A program made the position numbers and the translations under genes. Positions 805 through 42,600 of a stretch of DNA of 64,000 bases are shown here, one piece after another (the stretch's first letter is position 1; the number at the start of each line of letters is the position of its first letter). Source of the DNA: Phyllobates terribilis (lineage: Eukaryota); assembly GCF_046119375.1 (NCBI RefSeq), contig NW_027362768.1, positions 164,548,001 through 164,612,000 on the forward strand, read 5' to 3'. A model generated the notes under the pieces. That model did no database searches and had not been told where the DNA came from. It saw nothing but the letters and a program-made list of their open reading frames with translations.

Positions 805-968
805 CTCTAGACTGAATACTCTGAGGATCAATCTGTAAATCACCCATGGTGTTCGGTGGGGTTGTGTTTTTCAGTTCTTCATACACTTTATCCACCATCT
901 CTCTGTGGGTCGGGGTTTCTGTCTCATTTGCAAATTCTACATTCATGGAGGGCACTAAGGAACCGCTC
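805..968 (-). CDS. SEA domain C-terminal exon, module A (164 bp; (M)SGSLVPSMNVEFANETETPTHREMVDKVYEELKNTTPPNTMGDLQIDPQSIQSR-G)
   Basis: Acceptor TTTTTCTGGATCCTTTCTGCAG| ends at 969 and donor |GTAAGT starts at 804 (minus strand). GS-hydrophobic motif and the terminal xIDPxSI motif are typical of SEA domains. A paralogous exon of identical length lies at 31710-31873. Confidence 0.85.
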
Positions 969-7853: not shown

Positions 7854-8271
7854 AGCACCACTCCTGCGTTTTTTTAATTTCACCACTGGAGTGGTGCTTT
7901 AGATGTAAGTCCCCTGCCCCCTGTCTCATATTTACCTGCCGCCGTCTTCATCCTTTTCCAGCGTTGCTCTCGTCGGTCTCTGGCCAAAAGTGCTGGTAGC
8001 TCCTGTGTTTCATGGATAGGCGCGGAGGTCACGTTTCAATACCAGTCTATGTGGACCTCGTTCTGGCTCTCATAGATTTGCATTGAAGTCTTGTGTTGTA
8101 ACTCTTCTGACTTCTGGCCAGTCAGAGGTTACAGGCACAAGATGGCGCCGGACCGGAGGGCTGTCATTAAAAGGTGAAGCCGCCAGAAGATGAATATAAG
8201 AACGGGTGCAGGGGGCTTACATTTAAGGATCCACTCCAGTGCAGAAAAACAAAACCCGCTGGAGTGGTGCT
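7854..8271. mobile_element. Kolobok/T2-type MITE
   Basis: TIR AGCACCACTCC / GGAGTGGTGCT flanked by TTAA (7850-7853) and TTAT (8272-8275). Homologous uninterrupted sequence TTATTTAATAGTCTGCA is seen near 3775 and 32360. Confidence 0.7.
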
Positions 8272-8918
8272 TTATTAGTCTGCAGCTATATGAAGCCGCA
8301 GAACACGCTCAACTACCGCTCATTATAACTTCTGAATGTTGTGCTGTGATTGAAGAAAAGGGGACAAAGGGCCCTACATTATTCATCATGGGGGTCACAA
8401 CATTTTAATATTAATCACCAGTAATCTGACGTCTGACTCAGTATCTGTCTTGGATAAAGAAAAGTCTTAGGGGCCGATTCATCTGGCTTTTGCACCTTTT
8501 TTCTAGTATAAAAATTGTTCTAAGAGCGACTCTGTGTTTGCACTCTATTCATTATTTCATTTGCACATTTTTTCAGTTTACTTGTTTGTTTTGTTTTTTT
8601 TTGTTTTTCTTTCAGCATTTTCAAGGTGGTTTTTAGTCATCATTTTTTACTTTTTAAAATGTCACAATTTTTTGAGCAATTGTACCCCAGTACCTTATAA
8701 AATCTGTCAAATAATTTTGCATAGTTGAAGAATAACATGTGACATTTTAAAACTCATTGGAGATTGTGTCTCATTTTACTCTAAATAGGTGTAAAAAAAG
8801 CCCAAAAAAGAAACATCTTTGAATTTGCACTAATTTATCAAACTTTGTGAGTCCATTTTTATGAATTTTGAGCAAAATTGTAACAAATTCTTCACACTTA
8901 TATATAATAATCACTTAC

Positions 8919-8980
8919 ATGAATTCTATGTCTCTTATTGTTTTAACCGCCCACCAAATTATCCTTAAAATTTTCAGCAC
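8919..8980 (-). CDS. SEA domain middle micro-exon, module A (62 bp; VLKILRIIWWAVKTIRDIEF-M)
   Basis: Strong acceptor CCCTTTTCTCCTTTCATCTCTCTCTACAG| (AG at 8982-8981) and donor |GTAAGT at 8918. Phase 0 in and phase 2 out, exactly bridging the flanking exons. The paralog is 59 bp (frame preserved). Confidence 0.8.
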
Positions 8981-9312
8981 CTGTAGAGAGAGATGAAAGG
9001 AGAAAAGGGTGAGAGCTCCAGTAATGACAGTGGTAATACCCTCATCATCCGATGTTGTAGCTTCTAGTCTGGTCTGCTGCAGTCTACACTCCTAGATTTG
9101 ACCGACGCAGCAGATGATGAACATGTAATTAAAGGAAGAGGAAATGGTGCAAAATGTGTCCCAAATCTACTACATCTGTTCTGATCAGTCGTAGATTTCA
9201 TTATTATAACTGTCAAAAAGATAAAAATGCAAAACATTACTGATATCGTAGGAACCTTTTAATGAGTTAATTTCACCTCCTTTCTTAGACTGGTTTTAAA
9301 ACAACACTATTA

Positions 9313-9738
9313 GACCTGATTCCGACATCCATATAATCAGTCTGAGTGCCAGCAGTGCTTTGCATTTGATTTTCATCAGAGTTTGGCCTTTGTGTCAGAA
9401 TTTATCAGTTATTTTCAAGCCGCAAGTAGAAAAAAAAAAGATTACAAAGCTTCTCCTATCTATTACAATGTTAATCATGGGCAGCACACGGGCAGCCCAC
9501 ACTGATGCCATCCAAGTGCTGTCCGTAATTTTCACTGACCAAAGACTTGTATCTGTAATTTTGATCTGTAGCTCAGATAAAAAATTAACATGTCCCAGGG
9601 ATTTTTGTGCAGACACAAACTCGACAAAAAACGGACATGTGAATAAGCACCATAGACTTTAATAAGCACCGTATATGTTTTATCTTTGAAAATCACGGAT
9701 GGAATATGTGCAAAACTCTCGGACATCTGAATGAGGCC
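9313..9738. mobile_element. PIF/Harbinger-type MITE, shared with the paralogous intron
   Basis: TTA-GACCTGATTCCGACATCC ... GGACATCTGAATGAGGCC-TTA (imperfect TIR, TTA TSD). Present at the same position in module B, so it predates the duplication. Confidence 0.65.
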
Positions 9739-9933
9739 TTAATGCATGTGGTTTACAGGAATCCATTAAATTAGATGAAACCTCCCACAGTGGAGAGGAT
9801 CAGATGAGAGAATAAATCTTCCATATCTCTGCCTGGTAGTACATGGTACAACATCAGCGTCTTATGAAATACATATAGAATGCATCCTAACAATGTTTAA
9901 AAAGAGTATGGAGATTAATACATTGTTACTTAC

Positions 9934-12900
9934 ATTCTCTTGTACTTCAGTGGACCTTGTTCTATAGTCTGCAGACGATGTGTCCTTGAGACTGTCCGTA
10001 TATGATCTGTTTATAATCCTGAATTTTAATGGAACTACATTTCTAGCAGTTGTGGTTGTCTTTGGACTAATAGTTGTTGCAGGCTCAGTGGCGGTACTTG
10101 GAGCCTGTGTGGGAGTTGGAGGCTCAGTGGCCGTGGTTGATGGAGACTCAGTGGCGGTACTTGGAGCCTGTGTGGGAGTTGGAGGCTCAGTGGCCGTGGT
10201 TGATGGAGACTCAGTGGCGGTACTTGGAGCCTCTGTGGAAGTTGGACGCTCAGTGGCCTTGGTTGTTGGAGACTCAGTGGCGGTACTTGGAGCCTGTGTG
10301 GGAGTTGGAGGCTCATTGGATGTGGTTGTTGGAGACTCAGTGGTGGTATTTCGAGCCTGTGTGGGAGTTGAAGGCCCAGTGGCCATGGTTATTGGAGACT
10401 CAGTGACGGTATTTGGAGCCTGTGTGGGAGTTGGAGGCTCAGTGGCGCTGGTTGTTGGAGACTCAGTGGCGGTACTTGAAGCCTGTGTAGAAGTTGAAGG
10501 CTCAGTGGCCGTGGTTGTTGGAGAATCAGTGGTGGTACTGGGAGCCTGTGTGGGAGTTGGAGGCTCAGTAGCCGAGGTTGTTGGAGCCTGTGTGGGAGTT
10601 GAAGGATCAGTGGCCTTGGTTGTTAGAGACTCAGTGGCGGGACTTGAAGCCTGTGTGGGAGTTGGAGGCTCAGAGGCCATGGTTGTTGGAGACTCAGTGG
10701 CGGTACTTGGAGCCTGTGTGGGAGTTGGAGGCTCAGTGGCCGTGGTTGTTAAAGCCTGTGAGGGAGTTGGAGGCTCAGTGGCCGTGGTTGTTGTAGACTC
10801 AGTGGCAGTATTTGGAGCCTGTGTAGGAGTTGGAGGCACATTGGATGTGGTTGACGGAGACTCAGTGGTGGAACTTGGAGCCTGTGTGGGAGTTGGAGGC
10901 CCAGTGGCCGTGGTTGTTGGAGACTCAGTGGTGGTACTTCGAGCCTGTGTGGGAGTTGAAGGCCCAGTGGCCATGGTTATTGGAGACTCAGTGACGGTAT
11001 TTGGGGCCTGTGTCGGAGTTGGAGGCTCAGTGGCCATGGTTGTTGGAGACTCAGTGGCGGTACTTGGAGCCTGTGTGGGAGTTGGAGGCTCAGTGGCCTT
11101 GGTTGTTGGAGTCTGTGTGGGAGTTGGAGGTTGAGTGGCTGTGGTTGTTTGAGACTCAGTGGTGGTACTTGGAGCCTGTGTGGGAGTAGTAAGCTCAGTG
11201 GCCGTGGATTTTGGGGACTCAGTGGTGGTACTTGGAGCCTGTGTGGGAGTTGGAGGATCAGTGGCCATGGTTGTTGTAGACTCAGTGGCAGTACTTTGAG
11301 CCTGGGTGGGAGTTGGAGGCTCAGTGGCTGTGGTTGTTGGAGCCTGTGTGGGAGTTGGAGGTTCAGTGGCCGTGGTTGTTGGAGCCTGTGTGGGAGTTGG
11401 AGGTTCAGTGGCCGTGGTTGTTGGAGCCTGTGTGGGAGTTGGAGGTTCAGTGGCCGTGGTTGTTGGAGCCTGTGTGGGAGTTGGAGGCTCAGTGGCTGTG
11501 GTTGTTGGAGACTCAGTAGCGGTACTTGGAGCCTGTGTGGGAGTTGGAGGCTCAGTGGCTGTGGTTGTTGGAGACTCAGTGGCGGTACTTGGAGCCTGTG
11601 TGGGAGTTGGAGGCTCAGTGGCCGTGGTTGTTGGAGTCTGTTTGGGAGTTGGAGGCTGAGTGGCTGTGGTTGATGGAAACTCAGTGGCGGTACTTGCAGC
11701 CTGTGTGGAAGTTGGAGGCTCAGTGGCTGTGATTGTTGGAGACTCAGTGGGGGTACTTGGAGCCTGTGTTGGAGTTGGAGGATCAGTGGCCGTGGTTGTT
11801 GGAGACTCAGTAGCGGTACTTGGAGCCTGTGTGGGAGTTGGAGGCTCAGTGGCCGTGGTTGTTGGAGCCTCTGTGGTAGTTGGAGGCTCAGTGGCCTTGG
11901 TTGCTGGAGACTCAGTGGCGTTACTTGGAGCCTGTGTGGGAGTTGGAGGCTCAGAGGCCATGGTTGTTGGAGACTCAGTGGTGGTACTTGGAGCCTTTGT
12001 GCAAGTTGGAAGCTCAGTGGCTGTGGTTGTTAAAGCCTGTGTGGGAGTTGGAGGCTCAGTGGTCGTGGTTATTTGAGACTCAGTGGTGGTACTTGGAGCC
12101 TGTGTAGGAGTTGGAGGCTCAGTGGCCATGGTTGATAGAGACTCAGAGGCGGTACTTGGAGCCTCTGTGGGAGTTGGAGGCCCAGTGGCCGTGGTTATTG
12201 GAGACTCAGTGGCGGTCCTTGGAGCCTGTGTGGTAGTTGGAGGCCCAGTGGCCGTGGTTGTTGGAGACTCAGTGGCGGTACTTGGAGCCTGTGTGGGAGT
12301 TGGAGGCTCAGTGGCCGTGGTTGTTGGAGCCTGTGTGGGAGTTGGAGGCTCAGGGGCCTTGGTTGTTAGAGACTCAGTGGCGGTACTTGAAGCCTGTGTG
12401 GAAGTTGAAGTCTCAGTGGCCATGGTTGTTGGAGAATCAGTGGTGGTACTTGGAGCCTGTGTGGGAGTTGGAGGCTCAGTAGCCGTGGTTATAGGAGACT
12501 CAGTGGCGCTCCTTGGAGCCTGTGTGGAAGTTGAAGTCTCAGTGGCCATGGTTGTTGGAAAATCAGTGGTGGTATTTGGAGCCTGTGTGGGAGTTGGAGG
12601 CTCAGTAGCCATGGTTGTTGGAGCCTGTGTGGGAGTTGAAGGCTCACTGGCCTTGGTTGTTAGAGACTCAGTGGCGGGACTTGAAGCCTGTGTGGGAGTT
12701 GGAGGCTCAGAGGCCGTGGTTGTTGAAGACTCAGTGGCGGTACTTGGAGCCTGTGTGGGAGTTGGAGGCTCAGTGGCCATGGTTGTTGGAGACTCAGTGG
12801 CAGTATTTGGAGCCTGTGTATGAGTTGGAGGCTCATTGGATGTGGTTGATGGAGACTCAGTGGTGGAACTTGGAGACTGTGTGGGAGTTGGAGGCCCAGA

Positions 12901-15900
12901 GGCCGTGGTTGTTGGAGACTCAGTAGTGGTACTTCGAGCCTGTGTGGGAGTTGAAGGCCCAGTGGCCATGGTTATTGGAGACTCAGTGACGGTATTTGGA
13001 GTCTGTGTGGGAGTTGGAGGCTCAGTGGCGCTGGTTGTTGGAGACTCAGTGGCGGTACTTGAAGCCTGTGTAGAAGTTGAAGGCTCAGTGGCCGTGGTTG
13101 ATGGAGAATCAGTGGTGGTACTGGGAGCCTGTGTGGGAGTTGGAGGCTCAATAGCCGTGGTTGTTGGAGCCTGTGTGGGAGTTGAAGGCTCAGTGGCCTT
13201 GGTTGTTAGAGACTCAGTGGCGGGACTTGAAGCCTGAGTAGGAGTTGGAGGCTCAGAGGACGTGGTTGTTGGAGACTCAGTGGCGGTACTTGGAGCCTGT
13301 GTGGGAGTTTGAGGCTCAGTGGCCGTGGTTGTTAAAGCCTGTGTGGGAGTTGGAGGCTCAGTGGCCGTGGTTGTTGGAGACTCAGTGGCAGTATTTGGAG
13401 CCTTTGTAGGAGTTGGAGGCTCATTGGATGTGGTTGATGGAGACTCAGTGGTGGAACTTGGAGCCTGTGTGGGAGTTGGAGGCCCAGTGGCCGTGGTTGT
13501 TGGAGAGTCAGTGGTGGTACTTCGAGCCTGTGTGGGAGTTGAAGGCCCAGTGGCCATGGTTATTGGAGACTCAGTGACGGTATTTGGAGGCTGTGTCGGA
13601 GTTGGAGGCTCAGTGGCCATGGTTGTTGGAGACTCAGTGGCGGTACTTGGAGCCTGTGTGGGAGTTAGAGGATCAGTGGCCATGGTTGTTGGAGACTCAG
13701 TGGCGGTACTTGGAGCCTGTGTGGCAGTTGGAGGCTCAGTGGCCGTGGTTGTTGGAGACTCAGTGGCGGTACTTGGAGCCTGTGTAGGAGTTGGAGGCTC
13801 AGTGGCCGTGGATGATGGAGACTCAGTGGCGGTACTTGCAGCCTGTGTGGGAGTTGGAGGCTCAGTGGCCGTGGTTGTTGGAGTCTGTGTGGGAGTTGGA
13901 GGCTGAGTGGCTGTGGTTGTTTGAGACTCAGTGGTGGTACTTGGAGCCTGTGTGGGAGTTGTAGGCTCAGTGGCCGTGGATTTTGGGGACTCAGTGGTGG
14001 TACTTGGAGCCTGTGTGGGAGTTGGAGGATCATTGGCCGTGGTTGTTGTAGACTCAGTAGCAGTACTTGGAGCCTGTGTGGGAGTTGGAAGCTCAGTGGC
14101 CGTGGTTGTTGGAGCCTCTGTGGTAGTTGGAGGCTCAGTGGCCATGGTTGTTGGAGACTCAGTGGCGTCACTTGGAGCCTGTGTGGGAGTTGGAAGCTCA
14201 GTGGCCATGGTTGTTGGAGACTCAGTGGTGGTACTTGGAGCCTTTGTGCGAGTTGGAGGTTCAGTGGCTGTGGTTGTTAAAGCCTGTGTGGGAGTTGGAG
14301 GCTCAGTGGTCGTGGTTGTTTGAGACTCAGTGGTGGTACTTGGAGCCTGTGTAGGAGTTGGAGGCTCAGTGGCCATGGTTGATAGAGACTCAGAGGCGGT
14401 ACTAGGAGCCTCTGTGGGAGTTGGAGGCCTAGTGGCCGTGGTTATTGGAGACTCAGTGGCGGTCCTTGGAGCCTGTGTGGTAGCTGGAGGCCCAGTGGCC
14501 GTGGATGTTGAAGACTCAGTGGCGGTACTTGGAGCCTGTGTGGGAGTTGGAGGCTCAGTGGCACTGGTTGTTGGAGGCTCAGTGGTGGTACTTGGAGCCT
14601 GTGTAGGAGTTGGAGGCTCAGTGGCCTTGGTTGTTGGAGACTCAGTGGCGGTACTTGGAGCCTGTGTGGGAGTTGGAGGCTCAGTGGCGGTGGTTGTTGG
14701 ATACTCAGTAGCCGTACTTGTAGCCTGTGAGGGAGAAAGACGCTCAGTGGCCGTGGTTGTTAGAGAATAAGTGACGGTATTTGGAGTCTGTGTGGGAGTT
14801 GGAGGCTCAGTGGCGCTGGTTGTTGGAGACTCAGTGGCGGTACTTGAAGCCTGTGTAGAAGTTGAAGGCTCAGTGGCCGTGGTTGATGGAGAATCAATGG
14901 TGGTACTGGGAGCCTGTGTGGGAGTTGGAGGCTCAGTAGCCGTGGTTGTTGGAGCCTGTGTGGGAGTTGAAGGCTCAGTGGCCTTGGTTGTTAGAGACTC
15001 AGTGGCGGGACTTGAAGCCTGAGTAGGAGTTGGAGGCTCAGAGGACGTGGTTGTTGGAGACTCAGTGGCGGTACTTGGAGCCTGTGTGGGAGTTTGAGGC
15101 TCAGTGGCCGTGGTTGTTAAAGCCTGTGTGGGAGTTGGAGGCTCAGTGGCCGTGGTTGTTGGAGACTCAGTGGCAGTATTTGGAGCCTTTGTAGGAGTTG
15201 GAGGCTCATTGGATGTGGTTGATGGAGACTCAGTGGTGGAACTTGGAGCCTGTGTGGGAGTTGGAGGCCCAGTGGCCGTGGTTGTTGGAGAGTCAGTGGT
15301 GGTACTTCGAGCCTGTGTGGGAGTTGAAGGCCCAGTGGCCATGGTTATTGGAGACTCAGTGAGGGTATTTGGAGGCTGTGTCGGAGTTGGAGGCTCAGTG
15401 GCCATGGTTGTTGGAGACTCAGTGGCGGTACTTGGAGCCTGTGTGGGAGTTAGAGGATCAGTGGCCATGGTTGTTGGAGACTCCTTGGCTGTACTTGGAG
15501 CCTGTGTGGCAGTTGGAGGCTCAGTGGCCGTGGTTGTTGGAGACTCAGTGGCGGTACTTGGAGCCTGTGTAGGAGTTGGAGGCTCAGTGGCCGTGGTTGA
15601 TGGAGACTCAGTGGCGGTACTTGGAGCCTGTGTGGGAGTTGGAGGCACAGTGGCCGTGGTTGTTGGAGTCTGTGTGGGAGTTGGAGGCTGAGTGGCTGTG
15701 GTTGTTTGAGACTCAGTGGTGGTACTTGGAGCCTGTGTGGGAGTTGTAGGCTCAGTGGCCGTGGATTTTGGGGACTCAGTGGTGGTACTTGGAGCCTGTG
15801 TGGGAGTTGGAGGATCATTGGCCGTGGTTGTTGTAGACTCAGTAGCAGTACTTGGAGCCTGTGTGGGAGTTGGAAGCTCAGTGGCCGTGGTTGTTGGAGC

Positions 15901-18900
15901 CTCTGTGGTAGTTGGAGGCTCAGTGGCCATGGTTGTTGGAGACTCAGTGGCGTCACTTGGAGCCTGTGTGGGAGTTGGAAGCTCAGTGGCCATGGTTGTT
16001 GGAGACTCAGTGGTGGTACTTGGAGCCTTTGTGCGAGTTGGAGGCTCAGTGGCTGTGGTTGTTAAAGCCTGTGTGGGAGTTGGAGGCTCAGTGGTCGTGG
16101 TTGTTTGAGACTCAGTGGTGGTACTTGGAGCCTGTGTAGGAGTTGGAGGCTCAGTGGCCATGGTTGATAGAGACTCAGAGGCGGTACTAGGAGCCTCTGT
16201 GGGAGTTGGAGGCCTAGTGGCCGTGGTTATTGGAGACTCAGTGGCGGTCCTTGGAGCCTGTGTGGTAGTTGGAGGCCCAGTGGCAGTGGTTGTTGAAGAC
16301 TCAGTGGCGGTACTTGGAGCCTGTGTGGGAGTTGGAGGCTCAGTGGCACTGGTTGTTGGAGGCTCAGTGGTGGTACTTGGAGCCTGTGTGGGAGTTGGAG
16401 GCTCAGTGGCCTTGGTTGTTGGAGACTCAGTGGCGGTACTTGGAGCCTGTGTGGGAGTTGGAGGCTCAGTGGCGGTGGTTGTTGGATACTCAGTAGCCGT
16501 ACTTGTAGCCTGTGAGGGAGAAAGACGCTCAGTGGCCGTGGTTGTTAGAGAATCAGTGGTGGTACTTGGAGCCTGTGTGGGAGTTGGAGGCTCAGTGGCC
16601 GTGGTTGTTGGAGCCTGTGTGGGAGTTGGAGGCTCAGGGGCATTGGTTGTTAGAGACTCAGTGGCGGTACTTGAAGCCTGTGTGGAAGTTGAAGTCTCAG
16701 TGGCCATGGTTGTTGGAGAATCAGTGGTGGTACTTGGAGCCTGTGTGGTAGTTGGAGGCCCAGTGGCCGTAGTTGTTGGAAACTCAGTGGCGGTACTTGG
16801 AGCCTGTGTGGGAGTTGGAGGCTCAGTGGCCGTGGTTGTTAGAGAATCAGTGGTGGCACTGGGAGCCTCTGTGGGAGTTGGAGGCTCAGTAGCCGTGATT
16901 TTTGGAGCCTGTGTGGGAGTTGAAGGCTCAGTGGCCTTGGTTGTTAGAGACTCAGTGGCGGGACTTGAAGCCTGTGTGGGAGTTGGAGGCTCAGAGGCCA
17001 TGGTTGTTGGAGACTCAGTGGCGGTACTTGTAGCCTGTGTGGGAGTTGGAGGCTCAGTGGCCATGGTTGTTGGAGACTCAGTGGCAGTATTTGGAGCCTG
17101 TGTAGGAGTTGGAGGCTCATTGGATGTGGTTGATGGAGACTCAGTGGTGGAACTTGGAGCCTGTGTGGGAGTTGGAGGCCCAGTGGCCGTGGTTGTTGGA
17201 GACTCAGTGGTGGTACTTGGAGCCTGTGTGGGAGTTGGAGGCTCAGTGGCCGTGGTTGTTGGAGACTCAGTGGTGGTACTTGGAGCCTGTGTGGGAGTTG
17301 GAGGCACAGTGGCCGTGGTTGTTAGAGAATCAGTGGTGGTACTTGGAGCCTGTGTGGGAGTTCGAGGCTCAGTGGCCGTGGTTAATGGAGACTCAGTGGC
17401 GGTACTTGGAGCCTGTGTGGGAGTTGGAGGCTCAGTGGCCGTGGTTGTTGTAGACTCAGTGGCAGTACTTTGAGCCTGTGTGGGAGTTGGAGGCTCAGTG
17501 GCTGTGGTTGTTGGAGCCTGTGTGGGAGTTGGAGGTTCAGTGGCCATGGTTGTTGGAGCCTGTGTGGGAGTTGGAGGCTCAGTGGCCGTGGTAGTTGGAG
17601 ACTCAGTGGCAGTACTTGGAGCCTGTGTGGGAGTTGGAGGTTCAATGGCCGTGGTTGTTGGAGCCTGTGTGGGAGTTGGAGGCTCAGTTGCTGTGGTTGT
17701 TGGAGACTCAGTGGCGGTACTTGGAGCCTGTGTGGAAGTTGGAGGCTCAGTGGCCGTGGTTGTTGGAGACTCAGTGGCGGTACTTGGAGCCTGTGTGGGA
17801 GTTGGAGGCTCAGTGGCCGTGGTTGTTGGAGTCTGTGTGGGAGTTGGAGGCTGAGTGGCTGTGGTTGATGGAGACTCAGTGGCGGTACTTGCAGTCTGTG
17901 TGGAAGTTGGAGGCTTCGTGGCTGTGATTGTTGGAGACTCAGTGGCGGTACTTGGAGCCTGTGTTGGAGTATCAGTGGCCGTGGTTGTTGGAGACTCAGT
18001 AGCGGTACTTGGAGCCTGTGTGGGAGTTGGAGGCTCAGTGGCCGTGGTTGTTGGAGCCTTTGTGGTAGTTGGAGGCTCAGTGGCCTTGGTTGTTGGAGAC
18101 TCAGTGGCGTTACTTGGAGCCTGTGTGGGAGTTGGAGGCTCAGTGGCCATGGTTGTTGGAGACTCAGTGGTGGTACTTGGAGCCTTTGTGCGAGTTGGAG
18201 GCTCAGTGGCTGTGGTTGTTAAAGCCTGTGTGGGAGTTGGAGGCTCAGTGGTCGTGGTTGTTTGAGACTCAGTGGTGGAACTTGGAGCCTGTGTAGGAGT
18301 TGGAGGCTCAGTGGCCATGGTTGATAGAGACTCAGAGGCGGTACTTGGAGCCTCTGTGGGAGTTGGAGGTCCAGTGGCCGTGGTTATTGGAGACTCAGTG
18401 GCAGTCCTTGGAGCCTGTGTTGTAGTTGGAGGCCCAGTGGCCGTGGTTGTTGGAGACTCAGTGGCGGTACTTGGAGCCTGCGTGGGAGTTGGAGGCTCAG
18501 TGGCCGTGGTTGTTGGAGACTCAGTGGTGGTACTTGGAGCCTGTGTAGGAGTTGGAGGCTCAGTGGCCTTGGTTGTTGGAGACTCAGTGGCGGTACTTGG
18601 AGCCTGTGTGGGAGTTGGAGGCTCAGTGGCGGTGGTTGTTGGATACTCAGTAGCGGTACTTGTAGCCTGTGTGGGAGAAAGAGGCTCAGTGGCCGTGGTT
18701 GTTAGAGAATCAGTGGCGGTACTTGGAGCCTGTGTGGGAGTTGGAGGCTCAGTGGCCGTGGTTGTTGGAGCCTGTGTGGGAGTTGGAGGCTCAGGGGCCT
18801 TGGTTGTTAGAGACTCAGTGGTGGTACCTGAAGCCTGTGTGGAAGTTGAAGTCTCAGTGGCCATGGTTGTTGGAGAATCAGTGGCGGTCCTTGGAGCCTG

Positions 18901-21900
18901 TGTGGTAGTTGGAGGCCCAGTGGCCGTGGTTGTTGGAGACTCAGTGGCGGTACTTGGAGCCTGTGTGGGAGTTGGAGGCTCAGTGGCCGTGGTTGTTGGA
19001 GACTCAGTGGCGGTACTTGGAGCCTGTGTGGGAGTTGGAGGCTCAGTGGCCGTGGTTGATGGAGACTCAGTGGCGGTACTTGCAGCCTGTGTGGGAGTTG
19101 GAGGCTCAGTGGCCGTGGTTGTTGGAGCCTCTGTGAAAGTTGGAGGCTCAGTGGCGGTACTTGGAGCCTGTGTGGGAGTTGGAGGCTCAGTGGCCTTGGT
19201 TGTTGGAGACTCAGTGGCGGTACTTGAAGCCTGTGTGGAAGTTGAAGGCTCAGTGGCCATGATTGTTGGAGAATCAGTGGTGGTACTTGGAGCCTGTGTG
19301 GGAGTTGCAGGCTCAGTAGCCGTGGTTGTTGGAGCCTGTGTGGGAGTTGGAGGCTCAGTGGCCTTGCTTGTTGGAGACTCAGTGGCAGTACTTGGAGCCT
19401 GTGTAGGAGATGGAGGCTCATTGGCCGTGGTTGATGGAGACTCAGTGGTGGTACTTGGAGCCTGTATGGGAGTTGGAGGCCAAGTAGCCGTGATTGTTGG
19501 AGATTCAGTGGCTGTACTTGGAGCCTGTGTGGGAGTTGGATGCTCAGTGGCCGTGGTTGTTGGAGCCTGTGTGAGAGTTGGAGGCTCAGTGACCATGGTT
19601 GATGGAGACTCAGTGGCGGTACTTGGAGCCTGTGTGGGAGTTGGAGGCTCAGTGGCTGTGGTTGTTGGAGCCTGTGTGGGAATTGGAGGCTCAGTGGCTG
19701 TGGTTGTTGGAGACTCAGTGGCGGTATTTGGAGCCTGTGTGGGAGTTGGAGGCTCAGTGGCCGTTGTTGATGGAGACTCTGTGGCAGTAATTTGAGCCTG
19801 TGTAGGAATTGGAGACTCAGTGGCAGTACTTGGAGCCTGTGTGGCAGTTGGAAGTTCACTGGACGTGGTTGTTGGAGCCTGTGTGGGAGTCAGAGGCTCA
19901 GTGGCCGTGGTTATTTGAGCCTGTGTGGGAGTTGGAGGCTCAGTGGCTGTGGTTCTTGGAGACTCAGTGGCTGTACTTGGAGCCTGTGTGGGAGTTGGAG
20001 GCTCAGTGGCCGTGGTTGTTGGAGACTCAGTGGCGGTACTTGTAGACTGTGTCGAAGTTGGAGGCTCAGTGGCCGTGGTTGATGGGGACTCAGTGGTGGT
20101 ACTTGGAGCCTGTGTGGGAGTTGGAGGCTCAGTGGCCGTGGTTGTTGGATACTCAGTGGCGGTACTTGGAGCCTGTGTGGGAGTTGGAGGCTCAGTGGTC
20201 GTGGTTGTTGGAGACTCAGTGGTGGTACTTGGAGACTGTGTGGGAGTTGGAGGCTCAGTGGCCGTGGTTGTTGGAGAATCAGTGGCGGTACTTGGAGCCT
20301 GTGTGGGAGGTGGAGGCTGAGTGGCGGTACTTGAAGCCTGTGTGGTTGTTGGAGAATCAGTGGAGGTACTTGGAGCCTGTGTGGGAGTTGGAGGCTCCGT
20401 GGCCGTGGTTGATGGAGACTCAGTGGCGGTTGTTGTTAAAGCCTGTGTGGGAGTTTGAGGCTCAGTGGCCGTGGTTGTTGGAGACTCAGTGGCAGCACTT
20501 GGAGCCTGTGTGGGAGCTGGAGGCTCCGTGGCCGTGGTTGATGGAGACTCAGTGGCGGTACTTGGAGCCCGTGTGGGAGTTTGAGACCCAGTGGCCGTGG
20601 TTGTTGGAGACTGAGTGGTGGTACTTGGAGCCTGTGTGGGAGTTGGAGGCTCAGTGGCCGCGTTTGTTGAAGGCTCAGTGGCGGTACTTGGAGACTGTGT
20701 GGGAGTTGCAGGCTCAGTGGCCGTGGTTGGAGACTCAGTGGTGGTACTTGGAGCCTGTGTGGGAGGTGGAGGCTGAGTGGCGGTACTTGAAGCCTGTGTG
20801 GTTGTTGGAGAATCAGTGGAGGTACTTGGAGCCTGTGTGGGAGTTGGATGCTCCGTGGCCGTGGTTGGTGGAGACTCAGTGGCGGTGGTTGTTAAAGCCT
20901 GTGTGGGAGTTCGAGGCTCAGTGGCCGTGGATGTTGGAGACTCAGTGGCAGTACTTGGAGCCTGTGTGGGAGTTGGAGGCTCCGTGGCCGTGGTTGATGG
21001 AGACTGAGTGGTGGTACTTGGAGCCTGTGTGGGAGTTGGAGACTCTGTGGCCGTGGTTGTTGGAGACTCAGTGGCGGTAGTTGGAGCCTGTGTGGGAGTT
21101 AGAGGCTCAGTGGCCGTGTTAGTTGAAGACTCAGTGGCGGTACTTGGAGACTGTGTGGGAGTTGCAGGCTCAGTGGCCGTGGTTGGAGACTCAGTGGCGG
21201 TACTTGGAGTCTGTGTGGGAGTTGTAGGCTCAGTGGCCGTGGTTGGAGACACATTTGCGGTACTTGGAGCCTGTGTGGGAGTTGGAGGCTCAGTGGCTAT
21301 GGTTGTTGGAGACTCAGTGGCGGTACTTGGAGCCTGCGTGGGAGTTGGAGGCTCAGTGGCCGTGGTCGATGGAGACAAAGTGGCGGTATTTGGAGCTTGT
21401 GTGGGAGTTGGAGGCTCAGTGGCTATGGTTGTTGGAGACTCAGTGGCGGTACTTGGAGCCTGTGTGGGAGTTGCAGGCTCAGTGGCCGTGGTCGATGGAG
21501 ACAAAGTGGTGGTACTTGGAGCTTGTGTGGGAGTTGGAGGCTCAGTGGCCATGCTTGTTGGAGCCTGTGTGGGAGTTGGAGGCTCATTGGCAGTGGTTGT
21601 TGGAGACTCAGTGGCAGTACTTGGAGCCTGTGTGGGAGTTGGAGGTTCAGTGGCCGTGGATGTTGGAGCCTGTGTGGGAGTTGAAGGCTCAGTGGCTGTG
21701 GTTGTTGGAGACTCAGTGGCGGTACTTGGAGCCTGTGTTGGAGTTGGAGGCTCAGTGGCCGTACTTGTTGGAGACTCAGTGGCGGTACTTGGAGCCTGTG
21801 TGGGAGTTGGAGGCTCAGTGGCCGTGGTTGTTGGAGACTCAGTAGCAGTACTTGGAGCCTGTGTGGGAGTTGCAGGCTCAGTGGCTGTGGTTGTTGGAGA

Positions 21901-24900
21901 CTCAGTGGCGGTACTTGGAGCCGGTGTGGGAGTTGGAGGCTCAGTGGCCGTGGTTTTTGGAGACTCAGTGGCGGTACTTGGAGCCTGTGTGGGAGTTGGG
22001 AGCTCAGTGGCCATGGTTGTTGGAGCCTGTGTGGGAGCTGGAGGTTGAGTGGCCATGGTTGATGGAGACTCAGTGGTGGTACTTGGAGCCTGTGTGGGAG
22101 TTGGAGGCTCAGTGGCTATGGTTGTTGGAGACTCAGTGGCGGTACTTGGAGCCTGCGTGGGAGTTGGAGGCTCAGTGGCCATGGTCGATGGAGACAAAGT
22201 GGCGGTATTTGGAGCTTGTGTGGGAGTTGGAGGCTCAGTGGCTATGGTTGTTGGAGACTCAGTGGCGGTACTTGGAGCCTGTGTGGGAGTTGCAGGCTCA
22301 GTGGCCGTGGTCGATGGAGACAAAGTGGTGGTACTTGGAGCTTGTGTGGGAGTTGGAGGCTCAGTGGCCATGCTTGTTGGAGCCTGTGTGGGAGTTGGAG
22401 GCTCATTGGCAGTGGTTGTTGGAGACTCAGTGGCAGTACTTGGAGCCTGTGTGGGAGTTGGAGGTTCAGTGGCCGTGGATGTTGGAGCCTGTGTGGGAGT
22501 TGAAGGCTCAGTGGCTGTGGTTGTTGGAGACTCAGTGGCGGTACTTGGAGCCTGTGTTGGAGTTGGAGGCTCAGTGGCCGTACTTGTTGGAGACTCAGTG
22601 GCGGTACTTGGAGCCTGTGTGGGAGTTGGAGGCTCAGTGGCGGTGGTTTTTGGAGACTCAGTGGCGGTACTTGGAGGCTGCTTAAGAGTTGGAGGCTCAG
22701 TGGCCGTGGTTGTTGCAGTCTCAGTGGTGGTACTTGGAGTCTGTGTGGGAGTTGGAGGCTCAGTGGCCGTGGTTAATGGAGACTCAGTGGCGGTATTTTG
22801 AGCCAGTGTGGGAGTTGGAGGCTCCGTGGCCGTGGTTTTTGGAGACTCAGTGGCGGTACTTGGAGCCTGTGTGGGAGTTGGAGGCTCAGTGGCCATGGTT
22901 GATGGAGACTCAGTGGCGGTACTTGTAGCCTGTGTGGGAGTTGGAAGCTCAGTGGCCATGGTTGTTGGAGCCTGTGTGGGAGTTGGAGGCTCAGTGGCCA
23001 TGGTTGTTGGAGGCTCAGTGGCCGTGGTTGTTGGAGACTCAGTGGCGGTACTTGGAGCCTGTTTAGGAGTTGGAGGCTCAGTGGCCTTGGTTGACAGAGA
23101 CTCAGTGGCGATACTTGGAGCCTGTGTGGGAGTTGGAGGCTCAGTGGCCGTAGTTGTTGGAGACTCAGTGGCGGTACTTGGAGCCTGTGTGGGAGCTGGA
23201 GGCTCAGTGGCCATGGTTGTAGGAAACTCAGTGGCGGTACTAGAAGCCTGTGTGGGAGTTGGAGTCTCAGTGGCCGTGGTTGATGGAGACTTAGTGCTGG
23301 TATTTGGAGTCTGTGTGGAAGTTGGAGGCTTAGTGGCCTTGGTTGTTGGAGATTCTGTGGCGGTACTTGGAGCTTGTGTGGGAGTTGGAGTCTCAGTGGC
23401 CATTGTTGCTGGAGCCTGTGTGGGAGTTGGAGGCTCAGTGGCCGTGGTTGTTGGTGACTCATTGGCAGTACTTGGAGCATGTGTGGGAGTTGGAGGTTCA
23501 GTGGCCGTGGGTGTTGGAGCTTGTGTGGGAGTTGGAGGCTCAGTGGCCGTGGTTGTTGGAGACTCAGTGGTAATACTTGGAGCCTGTGTGGGAGTTGGAG
23601 GCTCACTGTCCGTGGTTGTTGGAGACTCAGTGGCGGTACTTGGAGCCTGTGTGGGAGTTGGAGGCTCAGTGGCCGTGCTTGTTGGAGGTTCAGTGGCGGT
23701 ACTTGGAGCCTGTGTGGGAGTTGGAGGCTCATTGGCCAAGGTTGTTGGAGCCTGTGTGGGAGTTGGAGGCTCAGTGGCCGTGGTTGTTGGAGACTCAGTA
23801 GCAGTACTTGGAGCCTGTGTGGGAGTTGCAGGCTCAGTGGCTGTGGTTGTTGGAGACTCAGTGGCGGTACTTGGAGCCGGTGTGGGAGTTGGAGGCTCAG
23901 TGGCCGTGGTTTTTGGAGACTCAGTGGCGGTACTTGGAGCCTGTGTGGGAGTTGGGAGCTCAGTGGCCATGGTTGTTGGAGCCTGTGTGGGAGCTGGAGG
24001 TTGAGTGGCCATGGTTGATGGAGACTCAGTGGTGGTACTTGGAGCCTGTGTGGGAGTTGGAGGCTCAGTGGCTATGGTTGTTGGAGACTCAGTGGCGGTA
24101 CTTGGAGCCTGCGTGGGAGTTGGAGGCTCAGTGGCCGTGGTCGATGGAGACAAAGTGGCGGTATTTGGAGCTTGTGTGGGAGTTGGAGGCTCAGTGGCTA
24201 TGGTTGTTGGAGACTCAGTGGCGGTACTTGGAGCCTGTGTGGGAGTTGCAGGCTCAGTGGCCGTGGTCGATGGAGACAAAGTGGTGGTACTTGGAGCTTG
24301 TGTGGGAGTTGGAGGCTCAGTGGCCATGCTTGTTGGAGCCTGTGTGGGAGTTGGAGGCTCATTGGCAGTGGTTGTTGGAGACTCAGTGGCAGTACTTGGA
24401 GCCTGTGTGGGAGTTGGAGGTTCAGTGGCCGTGGATGTTGGAGCCTGTGTGGGAGTTGAAGGCTCAGTGGCTGTGGTTGTTGGAGACTCAGTGGCGGTAC
24501 TTGGAGCCTGTGTTGGAGTTGGAGGCTCAGTGGCCGTACTTGTTGGAGACTCAGTGGCGGTACTTGTAGCCTGTGTGGGAGTTGGAAGCTCAGTGGCCAT
24601 GGTTGTTGGAGCCTGTGTGGGAGTTGGAGGCTCAGTGGCCATGGTTGTTGGAGGCTCAGTGGCCGTGGTTGTTGGAGACTCAGTGGCGGTACTTGGAGCC
24701 TGTGTGGGAGCTGGAGGCTCAGTGGCCATGGTTGTAGGAAACTCAGTGGCGGTACTAGAAGCCTGTGTGGGAGTTGGAGGCTCAGTGGCCGTGCTTGTTG
24801 GAGGTTCAGTGGCGGTACTTGGAGCCTGTGTGGGAGTTGGAGGCTCATTGGCCAAGGTTGTTGGAGCCTGTGTGGGAGTTGGAGGCTCAGTGGCCGTGGT

Positions 24901-25847
24901 TGTTGGAGACTCAGTAGCAGTACTTGGAGCCTGTGTGGGAGTTGCAGGCTCAGTGGCTGTGGTTGTTGGAGACTCAGTGGCGGTACTTGGAGCCGGTGTG
25001 GGAGTTGGAGGCTCAGTGGCCGTGGTTTTTGGAGACTCAGTGGCGGTACTTGGAGCCTGTGTGGGAGTTGGGAGCTCAGTGGCCATGGTTGTTGGAGCCT
25101 GTGTGGGAGCTGGAGGTTGAGTGGCCATGGTTGATGGAGACTCAGTGGTGGTACTTGGAGCCTGTGTGGGAGTTGAAGGCTCAGTGACCGTGGTTGTTGG
25201 AGGCTCAGTGGCCGTGGTTGTTGGAGGCTCAGTGGCCGTACTTGGAGCCTGTGTAGGAGTTGGAGGCTCAGTGTCCATGGTTGATGGAGACTCAGTGGCG
25301 GTACTTGGAGCCTGTGTGGAAGTTGGAGGCTCAGTGGCCATGATTGTTGGAGACTCAGTGGCAGTACTCGGTGCCTGTGTGGAAGTTGGAGGCTCAGTGG
25401 GCATTGTTGTTGGAGCCTGTGTGGGAGTTGGAGGCTCAGTGGCCGTGGTTGTTGGAGACTCAGTGGCGGTACTTGGTGCCTGTGTGGGAGTTGGAGGCTC
25501 AGTGGCCGTGGTTGTTAGTGACTCAATGGCGGTACTTGGAGCCTGTGTGGGAGATGGAGGCTCAGTGGCCGTGGTTGTTGGAGACTCAGTGGCGGTACTT
25601 GGAGCCTGTGTGGAAGTTGGAGGGTCAGTGGTCTTGGTTGATGGAGACTCAGTGGCGGTACTTGGAGACTGTGTGGGAGTTGAAGCCTGTGTGGGAGTTG
25701 GAGCCTGTGTGGGAGTTGGAGCCTCTGTGCGAGTTGGAGCCTCTGTGCGAGTTGGAGCCTCTGTGCGAGTTGGAGCTGGTCCTGTGTTGGTTGATAATAC
25801 AGTAGTGGTTTGTTCTGTGTTCGGTTCCATAGTGGGTATTGTTGCTT
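9934..25847 (-). CDS. Giant PTS exon A (15,914 bp, about 5,300 aa), 63/39-bp repeats TATEPPTPTQAPSTATESPTT, ending in SEA N-terminus NVVPLKFRIINRSYTDSLKDTSSADYRTRSTEVQEN
   Basis: Uninterrupted 5322-codon ORF; acceptor TTATTCTATTTATGCAG| (AG at 25849-25848, phase 1); donor AAT|GTAAGT at 9933 (phase 0). The SEA start pattern F.I.N..Y...L.D..S..Y is typical. Confidence 0.92.
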
Positions 25848-26495
25848 CTGCATAAATAGAATAATTGACATTTACAAACTTTTCTGCTCCTTTTGTTATT
25901 TGTGGATCTCTCTATAAAATCTCTATGAATCTCATCCTGGATTATAGAAAGTATTAGTACAGATGATTCCTAAATTTATTCACCAATTACTGACATGTTC
26001 ACAATTATGATTGCTAGAACTATGACAAGACTTTGTATTGAGATCTTGGTTGGATGAAATTCACCATCCACATCAATGTCCACATCTAGTAGATTTGATT
26101 GAATCATGTGTGAACAATGATGTGAATTCGGATTCAGCCTGACAGTGCGGCGGTGATGTGGTGGTAAAGCTGATAAAACTCTGCCCTCCTGCAGTGGGCG
26201 CGATGGCGATTGGCCTATGTAGCAGTCACTTTCAGCTGTATGGAGCCGACAATACAGTTAGAAATGAAATCATGAATGATTGTAATAAGATAATCCAATT
26301 CAGCCGCCTCAGGCCTATAACTTTAAATTTTTTAAATGTCGTCGCTGAATTATATCATCTATATATTTTTCATTAGCATTACGGGGAATATCAGATTGTT
26401 CTTGCATTTCATTTTCTTTCATAGAATCCTCATGCTTATTCCATTATTCCATACTTGTCTGATGTAGTGGTCTGTGTGGTCTGAATGATTGCAAT

Positions 26496-31709: not shown

Positions 31710-31873
31710 CCCTAGACTGAATACTCTGAGGATCAATCTGTAAACCATCCATGGTGTTCGGTGGGTTGGAGTTTTTCAGTTCTGCAGCGACTTTATCCAC
31801 CATCTCTCTGTGGGTCGGAGTAACTGTCTCATTTGCAAATTCTACATCCATGGAGGACACTAAGGAACCGCTC
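31710..31873 (-). CDS. SEA domain C-terminal exon, module B (164 bp; (M)SGSLVSSMDVEFANETVTPTHREMVDKVAAELKNSNPPNTMDGLQIDPQSIQSR-G)
   Basis: Acceptor CCTTTCTGCAG| (AG at 31875-31874); donor G|GTAAGT at 31709 (phase 1). Splicing to 25847 gives G+AA = Glu, in frame with PTS exon A. Confidence 0.85.
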
Positions 31874-38581: not shown

Positions 38582-38640
38582 ATGAATTCTTTGATGGATA
38601 TGCTTCGAACGATGAAAATTCTCCCTAAAAATAACATCAC
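38582..38640 (-). CDS. SEA domain middle micro-exon, module B (59 bp; VMLFLGRIFIVRSISIKEF-M)
   Basis: Acceptor CCCTTTTCTCCTTTCATCTCTCTAAAG| (AG at 38642-38641); donor AT|GTAAGT at 38581; phase 0 in and phase 2 out. Confidence 0.8.
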
Positions 38641-39400: not shown

Positions 39401-39601
39401 TTAATGCATGTGGTTTACTATAATCCATTCAATTAGATGAAATCCCCCGCAGTGGAGAGGATCAGAAGAGAGAATAAAATTTTCCATATATCTGCCTGGT
39501 AATACATGGTACAACATCAACGTCCTATGAAATATATATAGACTACATCTTAACAATAAGATTATGAAAAAGAGTATGGAGATGAATTCATTGTTACTTA
39601 C

Positions 39602-42600
39602 TATGTTAACTATTTCAGTGGACTGTCTTCTATAGTCTGCAGACGATGTGTCTCTGAGACTTTCCGTATATGATCTGTTTATAATCTTGAATTTTAATGG
39701 AACTACGTTGTTAGGAGTTTTGGTTGTCTTTGGCAGAGTAATCGTTGTGGACTTAATGGTTGCGGCGGCTGGAGGCGCAGCGGGGGTGGACTCTGCAGGG
39801 GTGGACGGAGGAGCAGCTGGGGTGGTCTCTGCGAGGGTGGACGGAGGCGCAGCGGGGGTGGACGGAGGCGCAGCGGGTGTGGTCTCTGCAGAGGTGGACG
39901 GAGGCGCAGCGGAGGTGGTCACTGCGGGGGTGGATGGAGGCGCAGCGGGGGTGTTCTCTGCGGGGGTGGATGGAGGCGCAGTGGGGGTGGTCTCTGCGGG
40001 GGTAGATGGAGGCGCAGCGGGCGTGGTCTCTGTGGGGGTGGACGGAGGTGCAGCGGTGGTGGTCTTTGCGGGGGTGGACAAAGGAGCAACGGGGGTCGTC
40101 TCTGCGGAGGTGGACGGAGGCGCAGCGGTGGAGGTCTCTGCGGGGGTGGACGGAGGCGCAGCGGTGGTGGTCTTTGCGGGGGTGGACAAAGGCGCAGCGG
40201 GGGTCGTCTCTGCGGAGGTGGACGGAGGCGCAGCGGTGGTTGACTCTGCGGGGGTGGACAAAGGCGCAGAGGGGGTTGTCTTTGTGGGTGTGGATGGAGG
40301 CGCAGCGAGAGTGGTCTCTGCAGGGGTGGGCGGAGGCGCAGCGGGGGTGGTCTCTGCGGGGGTGGACAGAGGCGCAGCGGGGGTGGACGGAGGCGCATCG
40401 GGGGTGGTCTCTGCGGGGGTGGAAGGAGGCGCAGCGGGGGTGGACGGAGGCACAGCGGTGGTGGTCTCTGCGGGGGTGGACGGAGGCGCAGCGGGGGTGG
40501 TCTCTGCGGGGGTGGACGGAGGTGCAGCGGGGGTGGTCTCTGCGGGGGTGGACGGAGGTGCAGCAGGGGTGGTCTCTGCGGGGGTGGACGGAGGCGCAGT
40601 GGGGGTGGATGGAGGCGCATCGGGGGGCGTCTCTGCGGGGGTGGACGGAGGCGCAGCGGGGGTGGTCTCTGCGGGGGAGGACGGAGGTGCAGCGGGGGTG
40701 GACGGAGGCGCTGCGGGGGTGGACTCTGCGGGGGTAGACGGAGGCGCAGCGGGGGTGGACGGAGGAGCAGCGGGGGTCGTCTCTGCGTGGGTGGACGGAG
40801 GCGCAGCGGAGGTGGTCTCTGCGGGGGTGGACAGATGTGCAGCGGGGGTGGTCTTTGCGAGGGTGGATGGAGGCGCAGCGGGGGTGGTCTCTGCGGGGGT
40901 GTACTGAGGCGCAGCAGGGGTGGTCTCTGCGGTGGTGGACGGAGGCGCAGCGGGGGTGCTCTCTGCGGGGGTGGACGGAGGTGCAGCGGGGGTGGACGGA
41001 GGCGCCGCGGCGGTGGTCTCTGCGGGGGTGGATGGAGGCGCAGCGGGGGTCGTCTCTGCGGAGGTGGACAGAGGCGCACCGGGGGTGGTATCTGCGGGAG
41101 TGGACAGAGGCGCACCGGGGGTGGTCTCTGCGGGGGTGGACGGAGGCGCAGCGGGGGTGGTCTCTCCGGAGGTGGACGGAGGCGCAGTGGGGTTGGTCTC
41201 TGAGGGGGTGGATGGAGGCGCAGCGGGGGTGGTCTCTGTGGGGGTGGAAGGAGGCGCAGCGGGGGTGGACGGAGGCGCAGTGGTGGTGGTCTCTGCGGGG
41301 GTGGACGGAGGCGCAGCGGGGGTGGTCTCTGCAGGGGTGGACGGAGGCGCAGCGGGGGAGGTCTCTGCAGGGGTGGACGGAGGCGCAGCGGGGGTGGACG
41401 GAGGCGCATCGGGGGGCGTCTCTGCGGGGGTGGACGGAGGCGCAGTGGGGGTGGTCTCTGCGGGGGTGGACGGAGGCGCAGCGGGGGTGGATGGAGAAGC
41501 AGCGGGGGTCGTCTCTGCGTGGGTGGACGGAGGCGCAGCGGAGGTGGTCTCTGCGGGGGTGGACAGAGGTGCAGCGGGGGTGGTCTTTGCGGGGGTGGAT
41601 GGAAGCGCAGTGGGGGTAGTCTCTGCGGGGGTGTACTGAGGCGCAGCAGGGGTGGTCTCTGCGGTGGTGGACGGAGGCGCAGCAGGGGTGCTCTCTGCGG
41701 GGGTGGACGGAGGTGCAGCGGGGGTGGACGGAGGCACCGCGGCGGTGGTCACTGCGGTGGTGGATGGAGACGCAGCGGGGGTCGTCTCTGCGGTGGTGGA
41801 CAGAGGCGCACCGGGGGTGGTCTCTGCGGGAGTGGACAGAGGCGCACCGGGGGTGGTCTCTGCGGGGGTGGATGGAGGCGCAGCGGGGGTGGTCTCTCCG
41901 GAGGTGGACGGAGGCGCAGTGGGGTTGGTCTCTGCGGGGGTGGACGGAGGCGCAGAGGGGGTGGTTTCTGCGGGGGTGGATGGAGGCGCAGCGGGGGTGG
42001 ACAGAGGCGCAGCGGGGGTGGTCTCTGCGGGGGTGGATGGAGGCGCAGCGGGGGTGGTCTCTGCGGGGGTGGATGGAGGCGCAGCAGGGGTGGTCTCTGC
42101 GGTGGAGGACAGAGGCGCAGTGGGGGTGCTCTCTGCGGGGGTGGACGGAGGTGCAGCGGGGGTGGACGGAGGCGCCACTGGGGTGGTCTCTGCGGGGGTG
42201 GATGGAGGCGCAGCGGGGCTGGTCTCTGCGGGGGTGTACTGAGGCGCAGCAGGGGTGGTCTCTGCGGGGGTGGACAGAGGCGCACCTGGGGTGGTTTCTG
42301 CGGGGGTGGACGGAGGCGCAGCGGGGTTGGTCTCTGCGGGGATGGACGGAGGCCCTGCGGGGGTGGTTTCTGCGGGGGTGGACGGAGGTGCAACGAGGGT
42401 GGACGGAGGTGCACCGGGGGTGGTCTCTGCGGGGAAGGATGGAGGCGCAGCGGGGGAGGTCTCTGCGGGGGTGGACAGAGGCACTGCGGGGGTGGTCTCT
42501 GCGGTGGTGGACGGAGGCGCAGCGGGGGTGGTCTCTGCGGGGGTGGACGGAGGCGCAGCGGGGGTGGTCTCTGCGGGGGTGGACGGAGGCGCAGCGGGGG

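Follow-up and report, generated by a model that had tools for sequence, protein, structure and literature searches.

The window analysed here is a stretch of 64,000 nt from Phyllobates terribilis, most of which is filled by two G-rich arrays on the plus strand (10073-25777 and 39771-64000). According to TRF, the former is built from a 63-nt unit (21 aa, ~57% GC) and the latter from a 36-nt unit (12 aa, ETTPAAPPSTPA, ~72% GC). On the minus strand, each array is a single open frame rich in Pro, Thr, and Ser, with 5,349 codons (25911..9865) and 8,199 codons (64000..39404), respectively, and both giant frames are mucin PTS exons. The window is predicted to comprise two consecutive cassettes, A and B, of one giant minus-strand mucin gene of the [PTS-SEA]n type. 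The two cassettes share one plan, in which a multi-kb PTS-repeat exon whose last 35 codons begin the SEA domain is followed by a micro-exon of ~60 nt and then by a 164-nt exon that completes SEA. Although the SEA exons and introns that adjoin the two PTS arrays are 85-97% identical, the arrays themselves have no repeat unit in common; either turnover is far quicker in them than in the other parts of the cassette, or those other parts are being homogenised.

All exons of both cassettes lie on the minus strand. The PTS exon of cassette B (39602..64000) runs off the window edge and ends at the donor ATA/GTAAGT at 39602 (the slash marks the splice junction), and SEA-B begins within it, the closing 105 nt (39706..39602) coding for residues 1-35 of the domain, which match Pfam SEA positions 3-35 with E = 2.6e-4. 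Micro-exon B (38582..38640, 59 nt) encodes VMLFLGRIFIVRSISIKEF(M) between the acceptor aaAG/G and the donor AT/GTAAGT, and exon 3 of this cassette (31710..31873, from G/SLVSSMDVEF to QSIQSR) ends in phase 1. The PTS exon of cassette A (9934..25847) starts in phase 1 at the acceptor tatgcAG/AA (25848/25847), and the first 35 residues of SEA-A, encoded by its last 105 nt (10038..9934), match Pfam SEA 3-35 with E = 1.1e-4. Downstream of it are intron 1 of cassette A (8981..9933, 953 nt), which a spliced RNA contig from run X4 omits exactly with GT..AG ends, micro-exon A (8919..8980, 62 nt), which encodes VLKILRIIWWAVKTIRDIEF(M) between the acceptor ctacAG/G and the donor AT/GTAAGT, and exon 3 (805..968, from G/SLVPSMNVEF to QSIQSR), which also ends in phase 1. 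Both micro-exons are entered in phase 0 and left with two dangling bases, AT, and the first G of exon 3 completes the split codon for the Met of "EFM". A reading of this DNA made from the sequence alone, hereafter the sequence-only reading, had placed a 62-nt exon at 8919-8980 with a sister at 38582-38640 and had stated that splice sites, phase, and the terminal EFM are kept; the coordinates proved exact, and the kept features are seen in both copies.

The spliced SEA-A (110 aa) scored 28.0 bits against Pfam SEA (PF01390) over positions 3-106 of 106, above the gathering score of 26.4, while the spliced SEA-B scored 24.6 bits (E = 2.8e-5), slightly under this cut-off. On the strength of these profile matches, the spliced products are predicted to be SEA domains. 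In SEA-A, the frame, the splice sites, and the hydrophobic pattern are intact. A PDB sequence search with SEA-B gave no match at E <= 10, and a single-sequence AlphaFold2 model was poor (pLDDT 66.8, pTM 0.28) and had no strands. The phase-1 end of exon 3 of B is in frame with the acceptor of PTS exon A, and in gene models of the frog Anomaloglossus SEA exon 3 leads straight into PTS sequence. Because of this phase fit and these models, we regard SEA-A and SEA-B as consecutive modules of one mucin, which bears out the earlier proposal of tandem SEA domains. Furthermore, the homology between the two cassettes persists past exon 3 of A up to the left window edge, so that one or more further cassettes are expected downstream. 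The cassettes are phase-symmetric (1-1), and skipping one of them preserves the reading frame. With exons of >5,000 and >8,000 codons, the gene seems to lack annotation, or to be annotated in fragments only, in the genomes of dendrobatoid frogs.

We compared the two micro-exons by MAFFT and obtained 38 matches, 21 mismatches, and one 3-nt gap (64.4% identity), with 8 of 20 residues identical at the protein level. All of the differing codons (13/13) are replacements, to which one codon indel is added, and the conserved residues are all codon-identical. The figures given before (21 mismatches in 59 nt plus a 3-nt indel, ~64%, 8/20 residues) were all reproduced by MAFFT, and the codon comparison agreed with the claim that every differing codon is a replacement and that no identical residue carries a silent change. 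The sequence-only reading had further noted that the divergence spills into the end of exon 1. This was also observed: the last nine codons of exon 1 (9934..9960 on the minus strand in A), which read TRSTEVQEN in A and RQSTEIVNI in B, are mismatched at 11 of 27 nt, and the first 26 SEA codons in the same exon are 95% identical (4 mismatches in 78 nt). On the mRNA, the diverged patch is one block of 27 codons (SEA codons 26-52) with 32 mismatches in 78 nt. On the DNA, it consists of mismatches at 9959..9934 and 8983..8928, split by the 953-nt intron and ending a few nt from the splice sites; the 29 bases past the micro-exon donor are identical in A and B. When all 60-column windows of the 1.7-kb alignment were ranked, the most mismatched one was the micro-exon (22 mismatches), followed by an A-rich low-complexity tract at 8612-8554 with 20. 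Fisher's test gave p = 1.8e-7 for the micro-exon versus the introns and p = 3e-12 for the whole patch versus the introns. A compensated frameshift behind the protein difference was rejected; the nucleotides themselves have diverged and show no shifted-frame similarity. Within the window, we found no other, alternative, or mutually exclusive copy of either micro-exon and no conversion donor.

Over its full length, intron 1 shows 90.6% identity between A and B, and intron 2 shows 89.7% where it can be aligned. Intron 1 is heterogeneous (p = 6e-5), since its 5' 678 nt are 88.3% identical and its 3' 275 nt (9255..8981) are 96.3% identical. The introns had been described as near-identical. This holds beside the exon, where 8991-9280 and 38650-38930 are 96.4% identical, but not for the whole introns, which are ~90% identical and form a mosaic of 88% and 96% blocks. 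Such a mosaic points to gene conversion as its probable source, and part of the contrast between exon and intron arises because the introns have been reset by this process. The 3' 275-nt block of intron 1 includes a 149-nt run of perfect identity between A and B (9201..9053), which stems either from recent conversion or from constraint on an intronic element beside the micro-exon acceptor. The middle of intron 2 is large and cannot be aligned, and each copy carries different retroelement remnants; as these explain the non-alignable middle at least partly, it gives no argument for great age.

Several other features lie in intron 2. At 33680-36864 on the plus strand, in intron 2 of cassette B, two long ORFs overlap each other antisense to the mucin, one of them containing a LAP2alpha-like domain (E = 5e-13) and its partner a reverse transcriptase domain (E = 5e-8). 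Together they represent a retroelement, which makes up much of the non-alignable middle of that intron. A different retroelement fragment occurs in intron 2 of A (5282-5800, minus strand), where a weak match to RVT_1 (E = 1.3e-4), which falls short of the curated cut-off, marks the remnant of a reverse transcriptase. The same intron contains a 2.3-kb insertion at 1149-3466 with ~29 copies of a 67-nt tandem unit (1280-3214); cassette B has the empty site, and the bases corresponding to 1148 and 3467 abut there at 32053. An inverted repeat with 106-nt arms (7851-7956 and 8169-8274, 76% complementary, 212 nt between the arms) is located in intron 2 of A immediately outside the block that aligns with B.

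RNA contigs were taken from four runs of one study that hold parts of the window and were aligned to 8300-10090. One contig from X4 (record 26, 183 nt, depth 29.7) covers 10007..9932 and 8978..8918 and extends 46 nt further, and these 46 nt must be exon 3. Its joint omits 953 nt with GT..AG on the minus strand, which is exactly the cassette-A junction (9934/8980). In the B-type junction contig, the end of exon 1, ATAGTTAACATA, is joined to GTGATGTTATTTTTAGGG at a depth of 437 in X4, 381 in X1, and 17 in X3, and all six cassette-B differences of exon 1 are present. RNA-seq had been proposed earlier as a check on both exons, and both turn out to be transcribed, the contigs holding the A junction exactly and a matching B-type junction. 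Compared with the window, the spliced A-type contig has no other letter in exon 1 and one in the micro-exon, and intron contigs from the same study (records 1-3) have no difference. The B-type stretch is a single unbranched contig of 150 nt with ~15 times the depth of the A-type contig; as contig depth is a rough guide, this 15:1 ratio is a hint rather than a measurement. The A-type junction contig is absent from X1, and in every run fewer than half of the A exon-3 words were present. Two or more further cassette types are expressed (contigs at 9995-10065), at depths of 212-276 compared with ~30 for cassette A. Both of these further types have a PTS end ...TATKPTTIAL ahead of PKTT, and one of them has CCA>CCG and AAA>ATG, which changes VVPLKF to VVPLMF. 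Two pieces of intron 1 (9430-9540 and 9680-9800) match abundant RNA contigs with depths up to ~700 and lengths up to 4.7 kb, which run on into unrelated sequence and in some cases join 9474 to 9720. They resemble transcripts of a dispersed repeat from other genomic sites rather than mucin pre-mRNA.

The nearest database proteins belong to P. terribilis and Anomaloglossus baeobatrachus. Two Anomaloglossus models (P0004 and P0006) start with 19-20 residues that stand immediately ahead of SGSLV, and this sample of two cassettes, compared at the protein level, served as the outgroup. Micro-exon B and the P0006 N-terminus are identical at 10 of 20 residues without a gap (shuffle p < 0.0002), whereas micro-exon A shares 4 of 20 with it (shuffle p = 0.84). 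From this similarity, the N-termini of both models probably correspond to the micro-exon. A read-through of intron sequence as their origin was disfavoured, since they match the B type with p < 0.0002 and do not resemble the intron read-through of the window. The identity of B to the outgroup is 50% in the micro-exon and 55-57% in exon 3, and P0004 and P0006 differ from each other at 3 of 19 residues in the micro-exon and 5 of 54 in exon 3. Taken together, these results indicate that B is the standard, older form and A the outlier and that the exon is not hypervariable in general. The earlier description of the exon as hypervariable could therefore not be upheld: B is about as conserved against the outgroup as the rest of the domain, the outgroup cassettes are only 3/19 residues apart, and the B-type contig is dominant. 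A third exon 3 in P. terribilis, which is B-like, was found in XP_073501362.1 (P0001), which matches SEA-B exon 3 at 46 of 48 residues (95.8%). In this protein, the C-terminal 47 residues encoded by a B-like SEA exon 3 are fused to a piggyBac-type transposase (DDE_Tnp_1_7) over a gene range of 45 kb; it is most likely an annotation chimera, the mucin being poorly annotated in the P. terribilis genome. Protein database searches gave no match for the 84-aa spliced query, none for the giant-ORF query when restricted to the SEA start, and P0004 alone for the P0006 query. An exhaustive HMMER search with exon 3 returned only one Phyllobates and one Anomaloglossus relative, and three further matches (P0002, P0003, and P0005) were set aside as unrelated repeat proteins.

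We next consider how the patch has diverged. All selection statistics come from one cassette pair, that is, from two sequences. In the patch, pN is 0.41 compared with a divergence of 0.097 in the introns (p = 5e-11), so that replacement divergence is 4-6 times intron divergence. By the Nei-Gojobori method, dN and dS are 0.56 and 0.20 in the micro-exon, where the ratio rests on ~12 silent sites, 0.69 and 0.30 in the exon-1 part of the patch, and 0.087 and 0.143 in exon 3, which is barely more diverged than its own flanks (p = 0.07). Outside the patch, the SEA exons of cassette A share 91-95% identity with those of cassette B. The 11 conserved codons of the patch contain 7.0 silent sites, none of which has changed; the probability of this is 0.50 at intron-level divergence, 0.025 at a neutral divergence of 0.41, which is the patch's own replacement value, and 0.004 at 0.55. 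In the micro-exon interior, nucleotide similarity exceeds the shuffle mean by ~4 SD, and homology is still clear. The first micro-exon half aligns without a gap and differs by single-base steps, and the interior of the second half is ~50% identical, close to random similarity. Among the 19 changed codons of the patch, nine have two or three differences. The changes include five hydrophobic-for-hydrophobic swaps, about eleven radical replacements, exchanges of charged and hydrophobic neighbours, and a one-residue change of register.

The replacement rate in the patch exceeds both the silent and the intron rate, as in a positively selected segment. Because the patch follows the exon boundaries, crosses a conserved intron, and has no silent change in its conserved codons, selection on the protein is favoured over a DNA-level process, and the combination of a 4-6-fold excess of replacement divergence over the introns with this lack of silent change likewise favours it over a leftover old allele. 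We concluded that conversion lowers the baseline, yet the patch itself has been rewritten by replacement substitutions. The sequence-only reading had pictured a specificity patch being diversified on tandem SEA domains, and of this the selection on a contiguous SEA segment stands, but the hypervariable exon does not; the proposed arms race with microbes or proteases and the cassette-specific assembly would be candidate functions.

Judged by the Pfam match and an alignment with the MUC1 SEA sequence, the patch would extend from the second half of helix 1 through the adjoining loop and strand 2, presumably ending four residues before the G-S of the hairpin between strands 2 and 3. The G-S pair is present in both domains (FMSG/SLVP in A and FMSG/SLVS in B) and is followed by LV(P/S), not by VVV or IVV, and neither frog SEA sequence contains a cysteine. 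In self-cleaving SEA domains, this hairpin is cut through conformational strain, and the two halves remain bound via their shared sheet until they are pulled apart (PMC10556640).

The explanation that we favour, to which we would give an even chance, is a lineage-specific adaptive rewriting of the helix-1/strand-2 segment of one cassette against homogenisation by gene conversion. The parts of the cassettes other than the PTS arrays, introns included, would stay similar through gene conversion or unequal exchange. In the lineage of cassette A, SEA codons 26-52 would have been rewritten by amino-acid-changing substitutions and a one-codon indel, while cassette B would retain the older type, and the driving force would be selection on the protein rather than a local DNA-level process. 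The rewritten segment would be where the N-terminal SEA half packs onto, and pairs with, its C-terminal counterpart, and SEA-A would then differ from the standard cassettes in its readiness for self-cleavage, in the force needed to separate the halves, or in what binds that face. SEA-A may, in other words, have been adaptively retuned in cleavage, holding force, or binding face. A more specific and distinctly speculative idea is that the helix-1/strand-2 segment is a cassette-specific setting of the SEA "mechanical fuse", which we think improbable as it stands. In a mucin made of serial self-cleaving SEA modules, each N-terminal half would have to hold its own C-terminal half. Were this idea true, cassette A would form a link that is cleaved with a different efficiency, ruptures at a different force, or is of no use to a microbial protease or adhesin, and the mucin polymer would break or shed at a programmed position.

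Some observations count against the adaptive rewriting of cassette A. Point substitution alone would have had to act at a greatly accelerated rate, and the segment could be older or imported instead; the neutral baseline is itself lowered by intron homogenisation; and the A-type transcript is rare. The strongest rival, which we consider possible though rather doubtful, is that the A and B types are old and that conversion has since homogenised the introns and the conserved exon parts, so that the exon only seems fast, while conversions that overwrote the patch were removed by selection or blocked by heterology. An old divergence of this kind would agree with the 88%/96% mosaic of intron 1 and its 149-nt perfect run, with the near-saturation of the second half of the micro-exon, with a B type at least as old as the split from Anomaloglossus, and with PTS arrays that differ in unit and in GC content (57% vs 72%), as the cassettes may far predate the similarity of their introns. 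However, none of the seven silent sites in the conserved patch codons has changed (P = 0.025 to 0.004), the ends of the conversion tracts would need to match three splice junctions within a few nt, and neither of the two outgroup cassettes has an exon of the A type, although one in some unsampled outgroup cassette could make the type ancient. Selection that keeps the patch distinct is still required, and the main difference from an adaptive rewriting is one of timing. We think it unlikely that part of the patch, chiefly the second micro-exon half, was exchanged in a single step or a few steps instead of by many point substitutions, either through patchy ectopic conversion with a divergent, unsampled cassette or SEA paralogue as donor, or through a "segment switch" like that of snake toxins. 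Such an exchange would account for the ~50% identity in the interior of that half and for the many codons with two or three differences; RNA reveals at least two further cassette types, and three-finger toxin genes show radical change of exon segments with conserved introns (PMC2474615, PMC2711939). Nevertheless, no donor-like sequence for either exon type occurs elsewhere in the window, the first half of the micro-exon shows ungapped single-nucleotide steps, and a patch lying in two exons around a conserved 953-nt intron would take at least two precisely exon-bounded events.

The rarity of the A-type transcript could also mean that cassette A is seldom included in the mature mRNA and that its SEA domain is decaying under relaxed constraint. 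The depth of its junction contig (29.7 compared with 437 for the B type), the absence of this contig from X1, the lack of any run with half or more of the A exon-3 words, and the in-frame skippability of phase-symmetric (1-1) cassettes are all in line with this. But decay cannot outpace the neutral rate, and the patch is 4-6 times as diverged as the introns; moreover, frame, splice sites, and hydrophobic pattern are intact, the Pfam score of SEA-A is above that of SEA-B (28.0 vs 24.6 bits), and the remaining parts of its SEA exons are 91-95% identical to B. We therefore hold relaxed constraint to be very unlikely. An error of assembly or alignment or a miscalled exon might be suspected in a region adjoining very long tandem arrays that are hard to assemble. 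This is effectively refuted and can be given next to no weight, since both exon types and their junctions reappear in independent RNA contigs and intron contigs from the same study match the window with no differences.

An exon that evolves faster than its introns is real and transcribed here, as a burst in one cassette. Mucin SEA domains are commonly treated as interchangeable spacers or cleavage modules, and the present case, which is supported by transcripts, means that selection can rewrite one structural segment within an internal module of a giant mucin amid DNA that conversion keeps uniform. SEA-A and SEA-B form a natural pair of variants for asking what sets the self-cleavage and the rupture force of SEA. 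For genome scans, the case also carries a caution, because the apparent speed of an exon relative to its intron, when tandem units are compared, in part reflects the time since the introns were last homogenised.

Several known systems resemble this locus in part. As in SEA domains of the MUC1 type, the order of elements in the Pfam alignment is kept and a G-S pair lies in the hairpin between strands 2 and 3 (FMSG/SLV in the frog and FRPG/SVVV in MUC1). The frog motif GSLV(P/S) differs from GSVVV or GSIVV and marks a putative cleavage site, and the frog protein has many SEA modules, whereas MUC1 has one that is membrane-adjacent. A closer parallel in architecture is MUC16, in which the second repeat exon (~23 aa) presumably corresponds in position to the frog micro-exon. 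MUC16 (CA125) consists of a 156-aa repeat encoded by five exons (PMC3431878), its repeats are partly conserved with some divergent terminal ones (repeats 18-19, PMC10829539), and splice variants drop whole repeats (PMC12563253). Both are membrane or secreted mucins with serial, tandem SEA modules in one polypeptide, each module being encoded by a few small exons. However, the frog modules are separated by PTS exons of >5,000 aa compared with a 25-aa linker in MUC16, the frog unit has three exons instead of five, and the conserved Cys59-Cys79 loop is missing. On these three grounds, we do not file the frog mucin as MUC16.

With regard to the mode of evolution, the nearest precedent is the "accelerated segment switch in exons" (ASSET) of snake toxin genes, in which exon segments are radically changed and introns are conserved (PMC2474615, PMC2711939). 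The frog cassettes are likewise tandem paralogous units in which a short contiguous segment is radically different (32/78 nt mismatched, compared with 9.7% in the introns), the introns and the other exon parts are highly similar, and the fold is presumably kept. Unlike a replaced, unrelated segment, the frog patch keeps nucleotide homology, its interior being alignable at ~4 SD with only the second half near random, and its first half has changed stepwise. Moreover, the frog case spans an intron and lies between cassettes of one mucin gene, and a change of target is not indicated. A similar balance operates in the MHC and in venom PLA2 genes, where recombination or conversion resets neutral sites while selection holds coding differences, and introns are more alike than the selected exons. 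Those systems involve alleles or separate genes with known ligand-binding sites, whereas the frog units are internal cassettes of one polypeptide. The locus adds one more example to a known evolutionary pattern, and its host gene is unusual.
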